This document shows, piece after piece, positions 3,811 to 62,541 of a stretch of DNA of 64,000 bases. The notes beneath the pieces are model-generated. The model searched no databases and was not told where the DNA came from. It saw only the letters and a list, made by a program, of their open reading frames with translations. The stretch covers positions 35,997 through 99,996 of the forward strand of contig DF237291.1 in assembly GCA_000708835.1 (NCBI GenBank), in the 5' to 3' direction. Position 1 is the stretch's first letter. The number at the start of each line of letters is the position of its first letter. This DNA comes from Klebsormidium nitens. Its lineage: Eukaryota > Plantae > Klebsormidiophyceae. A program made the position numbers and the translations under genes.

Positions 3811-4812
3811 TCAACCGGGGGGGAAGTCCTTCTTGGAGCCGCACTAGTGCTACTTTGTTCTGATTATCCACTTCACTGCAGCGTTGGCGTTCTGCAGGAA
3901 AACTCTGAGAATCGTCTTTTTCGGAGACGAACTCGTGATGCAGCTCGTGAAAGCATCTGCCATTCACTCGCAGTGAATGTTGTCGTCGCTCGACGACATC
4001 AGACTCAGACACAAATTAAAGAGCTTAAAAAGCATGGCATGGTTGGGACGACCAAACACAGATTGGCAAACATGATGAATGCGTCATTGGTTGCTCTCAA
4101 GTACGTGAGTCCTTCTGAGTAGAGGATTCGCACGAGGCTGTGGCTTGCGAAATGGTGTGCGTAAAACGAAGAAAGTGAGCTTAGGGCTCAAATGCCAAGA
4201 TTTAGAAGTGCTCTTTGCGCTCGACGTCAATCATAAGACGTTGACATTGATACTGTGTTCTGGAGTCCAGCGTGCCGAAAGCTGATCCAGGCAACGTTGA
4301 GACCTTTTCGACTCATGTATCGCTTGCTTATGCTTCCTTAACATGAACGAAAGGAGTTCTACGTGTCAGCTTGAAAGCGTTTTTCCAAGTTTGCTCGAAC
4401 ATTGAACATGCGCCAAGTGCGGCAAGGGTTCATTGGATAAGCTGATTCTGATTCAATCACGTCGAAGCAATTATTGTTATAATGCTCACATGCAATCTTT
4501 TTACCCTTCAAACGCTCGTACGTCCAGCTTTGTGACCCATGGGCCAGCTATCGAGCTCCAGGCTTCAGTCGGACCGTATGCCAGTACTGGCCATGGTGCA
4601 TAGTTATCCTTATGTATGACGTGTTCGAGCTTCAAAGCCTGCCTCACTGGCTAACTTACTTTTTTGTTGGCAAGGCGTGATTTAGTGAGATAGTACTGTT
4701 AAAAGCTACCGTCTCAGTGTAGTTACACTAGGCCGGTTGCCAGCTGGCAACCCCAGCTGATGTCATGACGTGGTTATGACGTTGGAGCAACTACAGTTCG
4801 GGAGCCGTCAAG

Positions 4813-5170
4813 CAGGGGGACCAAACACCCCAGGTACTATAAGAAAGTTAGCAACATGAACCATGTGCCAGCAGCTGAACGGCTAATTGCCCGGAACTGA
4901 AAATTGTTGGGATTGAACCTCCACAGGGTCACCTTTCAAAACCCAGAGTTTGGGGTCCGGGCAACGCGCCGTTTAGGAGGAATCGGGGGCAGGTTTAGAT
5001 AGGTTAACCAGCCAAGAAACTATTAACCTACCTCTAACACTCGTCTCAACCCTTTCCTCAGACCAAAGGGACATCCAATTTATGCAATCTCGACCGTCCA
5101 GATTGGGGAAAAAATCATCTGACGGTGCGGATCATGGTTCGCCCAGTGTCAGTGGTGTTTGGTCCCCCTG
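4813..5170. mobile_element. hAT-like MITE (358 bp)
   Basis: Perfect 17-bp terminal inverted repeats CAGGGGGACCAAACACC (4813-4829) / GGTGTTTGGTCCCCCTG (5154-5170). Flanking 8-mers CCGTCAAG and CCTCCAAG match 6/8, consistent with a decayed 8-bp TSD. No transposase inside. Confidence 0.7.
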
Positions 5171-53882: not shown

Positions 53883-54318
53883 TCATTTGTCATTGCTTGC
53901 AGCAGTCGAAAGTATCGGGCCATGGAATGTGTATGTAAAACCCGAGGCTGCATCTGGAAGGAAACCCACTTGTAGTGGCTGGGGGTCGACAACCTGCCTA
54001 GTTACATCCATCGACTGGGGATACCTTTTATCACTCATCCCGGTGGACAGTACGACGCTTTCCTATACCTATCTATCCATAAGCAGTACTCAACACCGTA
54101 CATAACATGACACGAAAGCATACCCTCTCACTAAGGGGCGTTTGCTGAGCTGCCCTTGCCACACTGGCAGATTGCATCCGCAGGCACTGCGCGAGGATGG
54201 CATCTGACACTGGCGATGTTGCCCGCACAGTGTCGTCTAAGCTTTTCTAGGAGACGGACTCACAGCAACGCTTCCCGCCTCTGCGTGGCAACCCCGCCAA
54301 CAACACACCTGCCGCGCT

Positions 54319-57300
54319 CTAGCCGAGCACGTCCGGCGCCTGCACGCCCAGCTTGAGCAGCGCGGGCAGAGGCCAGCCGTCTAGCGGGTTGCTCATCAGC
54401 AGCTCCAGGCACTTGAGCACGCGCGGGAAGGTCGCGCTGAACTTCTGCGGCACGTCGCGCACGACGGGCACCAGCGCGTCGGCGCGGCACCAGCTCACGA
54501 ACGTGTCCCCGTGGTGGTAGCTCGTCCCCGCGTGCGCGGTGGGCGCGGCCGCGGGGGAGGCCAGCAGCGGGTGGATGAGCGCCATGGTCAGGCTGCCGTC
54601 CTTCTGCTCCTCCTTGTAGATCACGGGCGTGTCGTACCCGGCAGGGCTGCTCAGCAGGACGGTGTCGGGCGTCTCGCCGAGGCAGTCGCGCGCCAGCTTG
54701 CGCGCCAGCGGCAGCGTGTCGGGCCGCTCCTCGCGCAGCAGGTCCAGGCCCGCGTCCAGGCCGCACATGGGCAGCTGCAGGCGGAAGCCCTTGCCCTTGC
54801 GCCGTGTGAGGCACAGCCGCCACGTGCCGTCCCACTGCCGCGCCAGCGCCGCAATGACCAGCACCCGGAACTTGCGCTCCCCAAACTGACGTGCCCTGCA
54901 CCGAGAGAGCAACAACATCAGAGGCGGGCCAGCGCTGCAGGCCTCGCCCAGGCTGGGGGCCCACCGAGCATCTCCCAGCACAGCCCCACTGCCGGAGGTG
55001 GGGCCTCCGCCCAAGGCCGCGGCAGGGGCCCCGGGGGCTGCATGGAGGGGGCGAACAAAAGCAAGGCGAGGGGGCAGCATGAGGGCGAAAAATGGCAGCG
55101 CCGCCACCGCAGTCCCTGTCACCCGCTTAGGTAACGGCACAATGGCAAGTTCTTGTGCGCACGGCATCCACACTCTTGGTCAGCAGACGAGGGTAGAAAG
55201 GCCCGAAGGGTTTGCCGGTGCAGCTTCAGACAGCCGTCTTCCCGCAAGGATCCCAATCCCGATCGAGACTCGCCCCCAGATGAGTATAACCAAAAACGTT
55301 TGGCAGAAAGATCAGGGCGTAACACCCCAATCACACGGACACAGCGGCATACGCCTCACTGGCACAACTCCTTCCCGCTGCTTGCACCGTACACCCTTGG
55401 CACCCTGGCAACCAAATCAGGGAGGGAAAAGTGGTAGGTGCGAACTTGCAATGAGGGCCACTCGCTGCCCTGCAGTGAGTTGAACCCAGCAGACGCTTGG
55501 CACCCTGCACGCTCCAAATAGAAACACTCAGCACTCTCTCAAGCATACAAGGACGTTATTAGGCTTGGAGAGGGTGCAAGCTGCCCCGGGGTGACTCACA
55601 GGGTGGGCACCAGGTTCTGCAGCACCGCCAGCTCTGCGCGCATCACAAGCTCCGCGTCCTTGATGCTGCGCTCCGCCGCCAGCGCCGCCTCGCCGCCCCC
55701 GTCCGCACTGCGGCCGGCTCCCGGGGGCAGGCCCTCACGGTGCATCTCCGTCAAGAAGTCCCGCGCCTGCGCCAGGACCGCGGCGCCCCGCTCCGCCTCC
55801 TTCCCGTCCGCCCCCTCCTCGCCGCCCGTGCGTGCCATCCCAGGGCTGCTGCGGCTCACTTTGGCAGCGAAACCCAGCAGCCCACCCGCCTCCGAGTCAG
55901 GCCCTTCACTGGGCCGGCCCCGCTTCAGGGCCGTACTACCACCGCCGGAGCTGAGCATCAGAAAAGTGTCGGCTGCGGCCCGCTCCCCGTTGGCACCCCC
56001 GGCAGGGTCTGCGCGCAGCGCAGCCAGCAGGCCCCCCTTGCGCTCCGCTGCGTCGTCCCCTTTGATCAGCCCCTCGTCGGCCCCGGCGGGCAGGCTGGGC
56101 GCCTTCTTGAAGCGCAGCTGGTCCGCGCGGCGGCGCTCCTCCGCCCTGTGCCGGTCCGCAGCGCGCAGCGAGTCCAAGAGCTTGGCCATCTTCAACTGGC
56201 TGCGCAGGCTGCTCTCCAGATTCTCCCCATACAGGGGCCCCGCCCCCCCCGCAGTGCCGGCCCCCTTACTGGGCTGTGTGAAGGGCAGCGCCGTTGGCTC
56301 GGGGGCTGCACACAGGCCTCGGGCGGTGGCCAGCTCCTCTTTGAGCGCCTCCAGCTGCGCCTCCCCCCGCGCGCTCAGCTGCTGCACCTTGTCGGCGGCC
56401 CGCTGCGCTGCGGCGATGCTGGCGCGGGCCACGCCCTCCTGGGCGGCCGCCTCGTCGAGGGCGCGACGGGCCGCCCCCTCCGCCGCGGAGGCGTCCTCGC
56501 GGGCAGCATGCGCGCGCCGCAGGTCGGCCTCTGCCTGCGCCTTCAGCCGCAGCGCCTCTGCCTGCGCATCCTCCACTGCCGCCTGCACACACAGCGGGCA
56601 TGTCACGCATCAGCCACCAGAACGAGGGCGACAGAGCCCGGGCCAGCGAGGAGGAGCACGCAGCAGCAAGAGGGCTGCCCATGACCGGCAGGGCTCATCC
56701 GGGAGGCTCCACGCACAGCGCAGAAGGGCGCGGGCGGAGACCCCCTCCACTGAGTCCTCCACCGCACCATGACCAGAGGGGGAACAGGTGGCCACCTGCA
56801 GCGTGCGCGTCAGGTGCGCAAGCCGCTCCGCCGCCACCAGCTGCGCGTCGCTGCCCTGCGGATGCTCCCCGGCGGCGGGGCCGTCGCTGGCGGTTCGCGC
56901 GTGGCCCCAGGTGGGTGCTGCCTCAGGCCGCCCCAGCGTGAGGGCCGCCTGGCCCCCCAGCAGCGGAGCCTCGGCAGGCCGTGCGCGATCCAGCCCAGCG
57001 CTGGCGGTGCGCAGACACACCAGAAAATTGCGTTCCACCTTGCCTCCACTCCCAGAAGGGGGCACGGTTGCGGAGCCAAAATCAGTGCGCGGCCAAGGGG
57101 GGGAGGCTGCCGAGACAGCCGCAGACCCAGCGGCGTCGGTGGGGAGGCCTAGCAACCGGAAGGAAGCATTCAGTGAGCGGACAGCAGAAGAACCAGAAGA
57201 CCGAGGCCCCCGGGGCAGCAAAGGCAGAGCACAAGGGGCACACTGCTGACGGAGAGTGTTCTCAGGAGTGTTCTCAGAGGACTGTACCTGGCTCCTATCT

Positions 57301-58196
57301 GAGCCAGGTAAAGGAGCGCCCTGCTGCTGTCATGGTCACCGTGTGGGCAGCACAGGTTAGTGGCTGCACGGTAAGCCAGGACATGCTCCCGGGTGGAACT
57401 GCTGGCGGACAGGGCCCAGCGGCCAACCCTGGCCGGCAACTTCGCGCATCAAACCCCGCACTAAGTTCGCAGCTAACCAAAGAAAGAGGGCAACGTCGAG
57501 GTATATCGACCATTCATATCCACAAACTGTCCGAATGATTACCTACAATTTCCCAGATGCGGTGCCTTTTCAGGCTAACACCTTGACCACCTTTGCAAGC
57601 TTGCCGCTGCCCCTGACCATCGCGGCCCTTGCCAGGCTGCTCCCCTGCACTGCCCACTCACCTGGGGCGACTCTGTCAGCTTCCGCTGCCAGCTGGCGCA
57701 GCAGCTTGGCGATGATGTCAGCGTCCTGACCGGCCACCAGCTGTGCGACGGCGTACTCGACCTGCGCCTGCACCGGCTCCACCTCTGCGCGCCGCGTCTT
57801 GTGCAGCAGGCGCGCGGCCAGGCCCAGGTGCTGCCCCAGCGCGAGGCCCTCCCCGGTGGCCGCCGCGGCCAGCCGCTCCTTCCAGTACGGCAGCAGGTCG
57901 CTCTTGGTCCCGCACAGGCGGCACAGGTACTGCCCGTCCAGCGCCGGCGCCTCCAGCACCCCCGCGTACCCCTGCTCCACCGCGCACAGCGCGTGCGCAT
58001 AGCGGCTGCACGCGGGCCGCCCACACTGGATGGCCAGCCGCAACTCAGCGGGGCTCACCGCCTGCTGGCAGTGCACACACGTGATGGGGCCGCTCTGGTC
58101 TCCGGTGACCGCAGCCTCCTGAGGCCCAGGAAGCGCAGCAGGCAGTGGGGCCGGCCCCAGCTGCAGCGACAGGCTGGCATCCAGGCCGCTCCCCAT
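54319..58196 (-). CDS. VIN3/OBERON-type PHD finger protein with coiled-coil and a C-terminal Nudix-like domain
   Basis: Exons 58196(?)-57662, 57148-56796, 56582-55600, 54895-54319 (phases 1, 0, 2 compatible). C4HC3: CVHC..CGRPAC..HALC..LDGQYLCRLCG..SDLLPYW. Ala/Glu-rich helical segment follows. 5' end uncertain. Confidence 0.75.
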
Positions 58197-59439
58197 GGGC
58201 AGCACAGGGGGTCCCCTGCAGGAGCTCACAGGGGGGGGGTCCCCAGGCAGGCGGGACGCATTGCAAAGGGCAGCTACGGGAAGAGGGAAAGGCCACGAGG
58301 GAACTCACGCACCCGCCAAGAAAACCAGACTGTGCGGGAAGGGGCAACTGGCAAGGCTAGCGCCAGTTGCAACACGAAAGAAGGATTTGCAACAGCAAAG
58401 TTTCGCTGCCAGAAGTCTGGGCACCTTGAAACCAGTGAAAGCGCCCTGGGCTTAAGAAACACAGAGAGACACAGCGGTGCATTCAGCTAGGTATGCTGCG
58501 GTGAGTCGTGACTGCATGATCGGATTACAGGAACTGGACCCCCGTCTGCGCTAGCTAGGACTAAACCGTAAACGTTTGTTCAGAATCACAGGATTCTCCT
58601 CTCCTCCACGCAACCGTGGCGGCAACGAGGGCGCAGCGCAGCTATTTAAGCTATTAGCTGTGCATGACTCCAAGCACGTCTGCGCACCGTGTTCGCCACC
58701 GGCCGGTATCCTGATTCCTGGACCTAATATAGTACTGAATCCTGATTCCTAGGGCCAATGGGCCATCGCCCATGATGGGGCTACCAGCCTACCCCCGGCT
58801 ACGGTACCGAGTACGGTACGTACATTCGCCAATTTAGGTAAATGCAGCGCGCTAGCTCAGCCTGGGTCACAGTTTCCCTGTCCACCCCCCCTTTCTTGCG
58901 TATACAGTATACAGCATGCTTATAAGCAAACCGCGCTGCATTTTCTGCTGAAATGAACAGATTTTGAAAGCTCTCCGACCCGCCTTCAGAGGGGGGATAC
59001 CCGGGTACCATTCGGCCTTCTCCGCGAACAAGAGGCCGAGGGGGCCCAACATGCAGGCCCCCGAGGGACAGCTAGGCCCAGGGGGCCCGGATTTCATTTC
59101 GAATATTTTCAGCATATGCATGCAAGCTACCTACGCTAATTTGAGGGATATATCAAACGAACAATCTGATTGTACGCATAGGATAATCGTGTCGATGCCC
59201 TATTGGGGGGGGCGCACTTCGACCGGCCGACAAACAGCGCGCGCTAGCGTGTTTGTGTTTTGAGAGAGTACGTACCGGAACGGTATGATTCCAAATAAGA
59301 ACGGTAGGTAATCGTTGTAACGCATAGGACTGGGGACGGTTGCGTCATGGAAACGGGCGCATGTACCGTAGGTACCGAAAGTATCTAGGTAGGTTGGTTG
59401 TAGGTTAACAGTAACCGTACCTCCTACGTATAGGCTATA

Positions 59440-62081: not shown

Positions 62082-62541
62082 NNNNNNNNNNNNNNNNNNN
62101 NNNNNNNNNNNNNNNNNNNNNNNNNNNNNNNNNNNNNNNNNNNNNNNNNNNNNNNNNNNNNNNNNNNNNNNNNNNNNNNNNNNNNNNNNNNNNNNNNNNN
62201 NNNNNNNNNNNNNNNNNNNNNNNNNNNNNNNNNNNNNNNNNNNNNNNNNNNNNNNNNNNNNNNNNNNNNNNNNNNNNNNNNNNNNNNNNNNNNNNNNNNN
62301 NNNNNNNNNNNNNNNNNNNNNNNNNNNNNNNNNNNNNNNNNNNNNNNNNNNNNNNNNNNNNNNNNNNNNNNNNNNNNNNNNNNNNNNNNNNNNNNNNNNN
62401 NNNNNNNNNNNNNNNNNNNNNNNNNNNNNNNNNNNNNNNNNNNNNNNNNNNNNNNNNNNNNNNNNNNNNNNNNNNNNNNNNNNNNNNNNNNNNNNNNNNN
62501 NNNNNNNNNNNNNNNNNNNNNNNNNNNNNNNNNNNNNNNNN
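62082..62541. other. Assembly gap (460 N)
   Basis: Run of N. ORFs crossing it are artefacts. Confidence 1.

Follow-up and report, generated by a model that had tools for sequence, protein, structure and literature searches.

Proteins of the VEL and OBERON families are the sole carriers of a tripartite PHD superdomain, composed of a zinc finger, a PHD finger plus a bundle of four helices, and Arabidopsis OBE1 binds H3K4me2 (PMC9640981). Nudix homology domains without enzymatic activity form an acknowledged class (PMC5389931): DBC1/CCAR2 (PF14443) is a proposed binder of NAD+ (10.1101/2023.10.27.564493), TIRR/NUDT16L1 binds the 53BP1 Tudor domain and also RNA (PMC5974088, PMC6043480, PMC9638026), and CFIm25/NUDT21 (PF13869) binds UGUA RNA (PDB 3mdi). 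The subject of this study is a gene of Klebsormidium nitens in which these two kinds of module appear to be joined. It lies on the minus strand of a stretch of 64,000 nucleotides (nt) that we call the window (contig DF237291.1, positions 35,997 to 99,996; coordinates below count from the first letter of the window), and its last exon, exon 4, encodes the C-terminal domain considered here.

It is highly probable, in our judgement, that this domain is a non-catalytic Nudix fold fused to an OBERON-type protein. The fuller reading, an OBERON-type protein that carries a pseudo-Nudix domain as a binding module, we hold at a probability of about 0.6. The protein would run from a PHD finger and helical bundle through a low-complexity linker and a coiled-coil-like region to a Nudix-fold domain of ~170 residues.

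The C-terminal domain and its predicted fold

On the minus strand, the exon-4 open reading frame (ORF; window:54319-54894) translates into 191 residues and a stop codon; the row for the coding part of the exon, with its pseudo-Nudix domain, is 54322..54895, and the stop codon is at 54319-54321. The translation holds RVLVIAALARQWDGTWRLCLTRRKGKGFRLQLPMCGLDAG, DTLPLARKLARDCLG, MALIHPLL, DTFVSWCRADAL and FSATFPRVL, all of them peptides from which a sequence-only reading of this DNA had proposed a degenerate Nudix domain at the end of a plant PHD protein. Guanine-cytosine (GC) content is 67-78% in the exons and lower elsewhere in the window, and long ORFs are common on both strands, so that any ORF of the window needs outside support. 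We obtained such support from an exhaustive single-sequence HMMER pass over 1.84 billion representative proteins, which returned five relatives of the last exon and nothing weaker; every one of them had E < 1e-44, with 54-80% identity in this search and 53-80% over the whole domain. The family made up of the window protein and these five has 58 invariant columns across the domain. Between the window and its closest relative, the ratio of nonsynonymous to synonymous substitution rates (dN/dS) over the domain is 0.27, and the domain is under purifying selection. Judged by the identities, the invariant columns and this ratio, the exon-4 ORF did not arise by chance in GC-rich DNA.

The closest relative (80% identity) is P0002, encoded on a JGI metagenome contig (L001). 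The others are P0001/P0007 (844 aa, from an ENA metagenome scaffold), P0003 (1008 aa, with the id of a Mesotaenium endlicherianum annotation), P0005 of Spirogloea muscicola (937 aa) and P0004 (396 aa, a transcriptome ORF). Both named species are Zygnematophyceae, and all six family proteins are unannotated; no database record was found for the contigs that encode P0003 and P0005. Word-index searches with the domain alone and with P0007 650-844 added no members to the HMMER set. Among the 1.84 billion representatives, no land-plant protein matched the C-terminal domain, a negative that depends on the sensitivity of the single-sequence HMMER pass alone, since a word-index search with P0007 60-330 found the Spirogloea protein only and missed even the land-plant OBERONs.

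We built two AlphaFold2 models from the six-sequence alignment. The model of the window domain reached a predicted local distance difference test score (pLDDT) of 64.5 and a predicted template-modelling score (pTM) of 0.66, and that of an orthologue (P0007 655-844) reached 73.8 and 0.74. Both models show the same order of elements: a pair of long strands and a short one at LP..G are followed by a helix, by five strands and by further helices. Foldseek returned only Nudix-fold chains among its 50 best PDB matches, both for the window model (best E 1.4e-4) and for the P0007 model (best E 8.4e-6, with 224 matches at E <= 1e-3 and CFIm25 chain 3mdi_B among the top ones at E 1.8e-5). An exhaustive comparison with VIA-align, covering 48,161 chains and with a stated background of Z 7-8 for alpha/beta folds, gave the same picture: the top 50 were all Nudix-fold for the window model (best Z 11.3, 143 aligned residues, root-mean-square deviation 3.5, 78 chains with Z >= 8) and for the P0007 model (best Z 11.8, 139 aligned residues, deviation 3.6, 90 chains with Z >= 8). 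The fold that had been proposed from the peptides was thus recovered with both models and both structural searches.

Among the structural matches are hydrolases, the C-terminal domain of MutY, the regulators NrtR, NadQ and AraR, CFIm25 and Nudix-like proteins of mitoribosomes. A shape search of the ESM Atlas with the window model gave eight rows, six of them Nudix-fold families and two of them unnamed clusters, with template-modelling scores by query of 0.53-0.61. In a search by language-model features, the first match was a Nudix cluster at 0.96 for the window domain, with PF00293 on 13 of 30 matches, and again a Nudix cluster at 0.96 for P0007. We take the domain to have the Nudix fold, which is an alpha/beta/alpha sandwich of ~130 residues; here the fold is predicted and not solved. 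An attempt to assign it to a Nudix subfamily failed: among Foldseek's 1000 best chains the Z scores form a flat plateau at 11-12, which spans ADP-ribose pyrophosphatases, MutT1, Ap4A hydrolases, decapping enzymes and the MutY C-terminal domain.

Joining of the domain to an OBERON-type protein

The gene extends from ~58660 to below 54100 and comprises four exons and, by hand count, 815 codons. Contigs from four public runs, belonging to four studies and two organism labels, were placed on 54100-58600. A single 3.4-kb contig, at a depth of 81-100, unites all four exons including the PHD exon, with junctions 57662|57148, 56796|56582 and 55600|54895, all GT..AG on the minus strand. The last of these was found exactly in contigs of all four runs and studies (54894 to 55599, 'cut +1', skipping 704 nt), and it keeps the reading frame: CT and G make a Leu codon, followed by ARQFGERKF. 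Contigs that cover introns have a depth of 4-5 against 81-100 for the spliced ones, a ~20-fold excess of the spliced form. The run type 'RNA?' is a guess in the run labels; the precise removal of GT..AG introns and the ~20-fold excess fit mRNA.

Exon 1 (coding 57662..58196, start codon at 58196) holds the PHD finger and the start of the four-helix bundle, and ends in phase 1. It is followed by intron 1 (57149..57661, 513 nt, GT..AG; joint 57147/57661 'cut +1' in three runs) and by exon 2 (56796..57148), whose 353 nt return the frame to phase 0. The frame of exon 2, delimited by the contig joints, was checked by hand; it encodes a low-complexity linker rich in Ala, Pro and Gly and has no Pfam family match. 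After intron 2 (56583..56795, 213 nt, GT..AG; joint 56581/56795 'cut +1'), exon 3 (55600..56582) encodes a helical, coiled-coil-like region rich in Ala, Glu and Arg, a linker and a terminal family block, AELAVLQNLVPT, the earliest conserved piece of the C-terminal domain. Intron 3 (54896..55599, 704 nt, GT..AG, joint found in 4/4 runs) separates this block from exon 4. In the family the block reads (A/V)E.AV....(F/V)P, so that a conserved unit straddles intron 3.

Family, PDB and relative searches of the window protein were run exon by exon. Exon 1 matched Pfam PHD_Oberon (PF07227) with 39.1 bits against a gathering cutoff of 28.8 (E 8.4e-10), through a finger that reads C4HC3 and extends from C40 to C95 (57912-58079). 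Its best PDB sequence match was VIN3, 7qce, where the second half of the PHD finger and the beginning of the helical bundle align with residues 68-146 (E 2e-4), and P0007 185-317 matched exon 1 in tblastn. By these matches the finger is of OBERON/VIN3 type, and the protein overall would be of an OBERON-like type. This agrees with the sequence-only reading of a plant PHD protein, with the qualification that the host is a streptophyte alga and not a land plant. A Tyr, likewise aromatic, stands two positions ahead of the PHD His, where OBE1 probably has its Trp W252. In OBE1, W252 is the pocket-divider (PMC9640981).

The window protein and its closest relative share the same start, MGS..LDA.LSLQLG, and both are without the N-terminal zinc-finger module of the superdomain; in L001 the counterpart of window 57662-58196 (minus strand), alike in start peptide and missing module, lies at 4261-4848. 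P0007 and P0005, which may keep this module, carry several clustered Cys residues at its place. The exon-3 helical region is 61% identical to P0002 1-335 and 48% identical to P0007 442-491.

The same fusion, which the sequence-only reading had proposed to look for among streptophyte algae, was found in a few related algae. A single unbroken ORF of 844 aa on the scaffold of P0007 encodes PHD_Oberon, the coiled-coil-like region and the domain and is collinear with the window in three blocks, and P0005 shows the same order of parts in its 937 aa (a Cys-rich PHD-like region, coiled coil, domain). In L001, coiled coil and domain form a single 525-aa ORF that lacks intron 3, with a PHD_Oberon ORF upstream. 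P0003 and P0004 have the domain behind Gln/Gly-rich or unrelated N-termini, and in P0003 the domain is moreover interrupted by an insert of ~54 residues rich in Gly and Ser; these two represent either another architecture or incomplete gene models.

Land-plant OBERON proteins (OBE1-4), built of the PHD superdomain and a C-terminal coiled coil, share with the window protein the PHD_Oberon finger, the helical bundle and then a putative coiled coil; unlike them, the window protein has no N-terminal zinc-finger module and does not match Oberon_cc. Land-plant OBE proteins are not known to extend far past their coiled coil. The VEL proteins (VIN3/VRN5/VEL1) belong to the same PHD superdomain family; in contrast to theirs, the C-terminus of the window protein is a predicted Nudix fold, and Pfam searches of exons 2, 3 and 4 found neither FNIII nor VEL polymerisation domains.

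Several further features were recorded along the gene. The 5' untranslated region (58197..58600, minus strand; spliced contigs X11 record 1 and X8 record 17, which reach ~59-64 nt further) contains an upstream ORF of 12 codons, from an ATG at 58261 to a TGA at 58226, that ends 30 nt ahead of the start codon and is a possible translational control element. The 3' untranslated region (54100..54318, minus strand) is extended by contigs ~250 nt beyond 54100. The low-depth contigs over introns (4-5, in the same runs) cover 54951-55490, 56580-56764 and 57195-57573 and stem from pre-mRNA, retained introns or traces of DNA. Two unrelated, highly expressed contigs match GC-rich words of 18-22 nt in exon 4 (54541-54562) and in exon 3 (56444-56461), probably as chance matches of low-complexity coding sequence. 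Long antisense ORFs that overlap the exons, such as 55591-56772 on the plus strand, were dismissed as a consequence of 70-78% GC. An assembly gap, a run of 460 N at 62082-62541, is the reason for the 9-14% GC that the composition profile seems to show.

State of the Nudix box

As a reference for the catalytic residues we used seven Nudix genes of E. coli K-12 (mutT, rppH, nudF, nudB, nudE, nudJ and nudG), in whose aligned products G38, E44, R52, E53, E56, E57 and W104 are invariant. The only alignment that hhalign produced between the algal domain and these proteins places it in the canonical register, with a TRR strand, LP..G, the helix and L-G, and agrees with the predicted helix at residues 61-72. 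This alignment is not significant and was used for the register alone. The layout of the sequence-only reading (an LLxRR strand, LP..G, a helix ending in LG and a later W..L) corresponds to this register.

On this basis, supported by the column table and the predicted helix, the degenerate Nudix box spans P42-E74 (54673..54771, minus strand), with C44, L50, K66, L67, A68, D70, C71, G73 and E74 in register. MutT G38/E44/R52/E53/E56/E57/G59 become C/L/K/L/D/C/G in the window protein. Across the six algal sequences, the column of MutT G38 reads C C A S T G, that of E44 L L - C L R, that of R52 K K R R Q R, that of E53 L L L N L L, that of E56 D D D Y G Q (Asp in three) and that of E57 C S S C T S; only the column of G59 is uniform (G in 6/6). 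The four metal-binding Glu (E44, E53, E56 and E57) are therefore replaced in all six members, which extends to the whole family the loss of catalytic Glu that had been noticed in the last exon, and of the box GX5EX7REUXEEXGU only G59 and the hydrophobic positions are kept. The box helix contains no invariant column and is the least conserved part of the domain, whereas in true Nudix hydrolases it is the most conserved (PMC5389931). In the predicted fold, the domain is a pseudo-enzyme that would retain the loop-helix-loop of the Nudix box and has lost its catalytic residues.

Conservation is concentrated elsewhere, in the RRKGKGxRLQLP loop, in the WCRADAL..VVRDVPQKFSA.FPR block and in a C-terminal DVLG (D.LG invariant). 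The basic Gly-rich loop RRKGKGFRLQ, residues 31-40 (54775..54804, minus strand), is invariant in 8 of 10 columns. The most conserved block, residues 131-160 (54415..54504, minus strand; WCRADAL..VVRDVPQKFSATFPR), is invariant in 21 of 30 and consists of the last strand with W135, followed by helices and a loop. Of the invariant residues, nine are Arg or Lys and five are acidic.

Compared with Nudix hydrolases (PF00293; MutT, RppH, NudF/NUDT5), the domain is alike in predicted fold and order of elements (best Z 11-12) and in the W..L and C-terminal helix that follow the later strands. It differs from them by the absence of detectable sequence homology, the loss of the four box Glu, a loop before the helix that is 8 residues longer, and an extra C-terminal helix and tail; unlike the small Nudix enzymes, it is also part of an 815-codon nuclear scaffold protein. 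With DBC1, TIRR and CFIm25 it shares the Nudix fold (here predicted), degenerate catalytic residues and a nuclear or chromatin setting. It has no Pfam match to DBC1, NUDIX_2 or any other clan member and stands as a separate small family of six sequences; and unlike DBC1, TIRR and CFIm25, it is partnered with a PHD finger and a coiled coil and ranges over streptophyte algae only.

Rival readings and possible function

A number of results weigh against our reading. Sequence and profile comparisons gave no significant connection with any Nudix family: the domain had no Pfam match at E<=10 in any of the six members and no NCBIfam match, single-sequence and profile searches of the PDB with phmmer and hmmsearch gave chance matches only (ISG15, prefoldin, SecD) and no Nudix protein, and hhalign against the seven E. 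coli proteins reached E 0.15 and a probability of 0.4%. The fold is accordingly a matter of prediction, made at moderate pLDDT with six aligned sequences. Since both models were derived from this one alignment, they are not fully independent; residues 131-160 have lower pLDDT in both, and in the window model confidence is lowest in the most conserved block (residues 146-157). Composition and weak matches alone point to a coiled coil, exon 3 giving no match to Pfam Oberon_cc and a weak one to the ATG14 coiled coil (E 0.29). Finally, no PHD was detected in P0003 and P0004, so that the domain may not be tied to chromatin reading in every member.

If the Nudix fold were an artefact, produced by structure prediction and language-model features from a shallow alignment, the domain would have some other, lineage-specific fold. 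The lack of significant sequence or profile similarity, the pLDDT of only 64.5 and 73.8 and the collapse of one of five orthologue models (40.5) would all be explained in this way. Against it stand models of two target sequences with the same order of strands and helices and with Nudix matches only, at Z 11-12 over 120-146 residues, together with an independent feature search that gave Nudix clusters twice and the single hhalign register, which is the canonical one of the Nudix box; we regard such an artefact as very improbable. Equally far-fetched, to our mind, is a domain that is still an enzyme, hydrolase or other, working with non-canonical residues such as the invariant D59, E95, D139 and D147. 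Strong purifying selection, five invariant acidic residues and the existence of divergent-box enzymes in the Nudix clan, for example IDI and MutY (PMC5389931), are what it could call upon; it would have to accommodate the loss of all four canonical metal ligands in 6/6 members, a box helix without an invariant column and the position of the domain on a non-enzymatic scaffold protein. That exon 4 is a separate downstream gene, and the fusion a matter of read-through or an assembly artefact, has nothing in its favour except the 704-nt gap between the ORFs. This reading is refuted by the in-frame GT..AG junction seen in four runs of four studies at ~20-fold the depth of intron-covering contigs, by the continuous ORFs of relatives and by the conserved block across intron 3; the 55600/54895 junction and the membership of the last exon in the mRNA of the PHD and coiled-coil exons, both assumed when only the sequence had been read, were in this way established from transcripts.

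The serious rival to ligand binding is a role in protein docking. Here the domain would be a pure protein-protein interaction or dimerisation module, similar to TIRR in its masking of the 53BP1 Tudor domain and devoid of any small-molecule or nucleic-acid ligand, that recruits a partner to OBERON-bound chromatin or regulates its own PHD finger. The models show poor order in the best-conserved stretch, VVRDVPQKFSATFPR, and in the invariant C-terminal DVLG, a pattern typical of docking motifs, and conservation is lacking in the box helix that lines the usual ligand site; many Nudix proteins, besides, are dimeric. TIRR itself binds protein through loops (PMC5974088, PMC6043480). The nine invariant Arg/Lys residues against five acidic ones, and the invariant RRKGKGxR loop at the edge of the usual substrate cleft, suggest instead an anionic ligand, and as a complete account of the domain we find docking rather unlikely.

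Returning to the pseudo-Nudix binding module on an OBERON-type protein, the Nudix-fold domain would act in binding and not in hydrolysis, and would give the PHD protein a second input. That it binds a nucleotide-type ligand or nucleic acid is a tentative proposal, to which we give somewhat less than an even chance. Because of the nine invariant Arg/Lys residues, the likeliest ligand would be an anionic one of nucleotide type (of the NAD+/ADP-ribose class, a dinucleoside polyphosphate or an RNA 5' end) or nucleic acid. The coiled coil may serve to bring two of these domains together, and the algal PHD finger may, by analogy with OBE1, read histones. A more elaborate version, which is doubtful as a whole, is a two-input chromatin factor: the PHD finger would read methylated H3K4, the dead Nudix domain would sense a nucleotide metabolite (of the NAD+/ADP-ribose class, or a dinucleoside polyphosphate) or a capped or NAD-capped RNA end, and the metabolic state would gate chromatin binding or partner recruitment, the module being older than land plants and lost from embryophyte OBERONs. 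The sequence-only reading is supported overall; its proposal that the domain senses a nucleotide, RNA or ADP-ribose keeps the standing of an inference.

Nuclear regulators that carry a dead Nudix domain are already known as a kind. The present family and its fusion to an OBERON-type PHD finger are new and are so far confined to streptophyte algae; in agreement with the earlier supposition that the fusion is undescribed, a full-text literature search found no paper that links OBERON to Nudix, nor OBERON to Klebsormidium. The non-catalytic branch of the Nudix clan gains a new, very small family. If the domain is a lineage-specific docking module only, the gain is a modest annotation. In animals, the dead Nudix domains of DBC1, TIRR and CFIm25 sit in nuclear regulators and connect metabolism, RNA and chromatin with one another; a counterpart from the plant lineage, joined directly to a finger of the histone-reader type, would, if true, be a compact system in which to study the coupling of metabolism or RNA to chromatin. 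Arabidopsis OBERON proteins control meristem establishment and vascular development, and their workings beyond histone binding are poorly understood. An extra domain under strong selection in the algae nearest to land plants would offer a handle on the ancestral function of OBERON proteins, on what this domain bound and on why it was dispensable on land.

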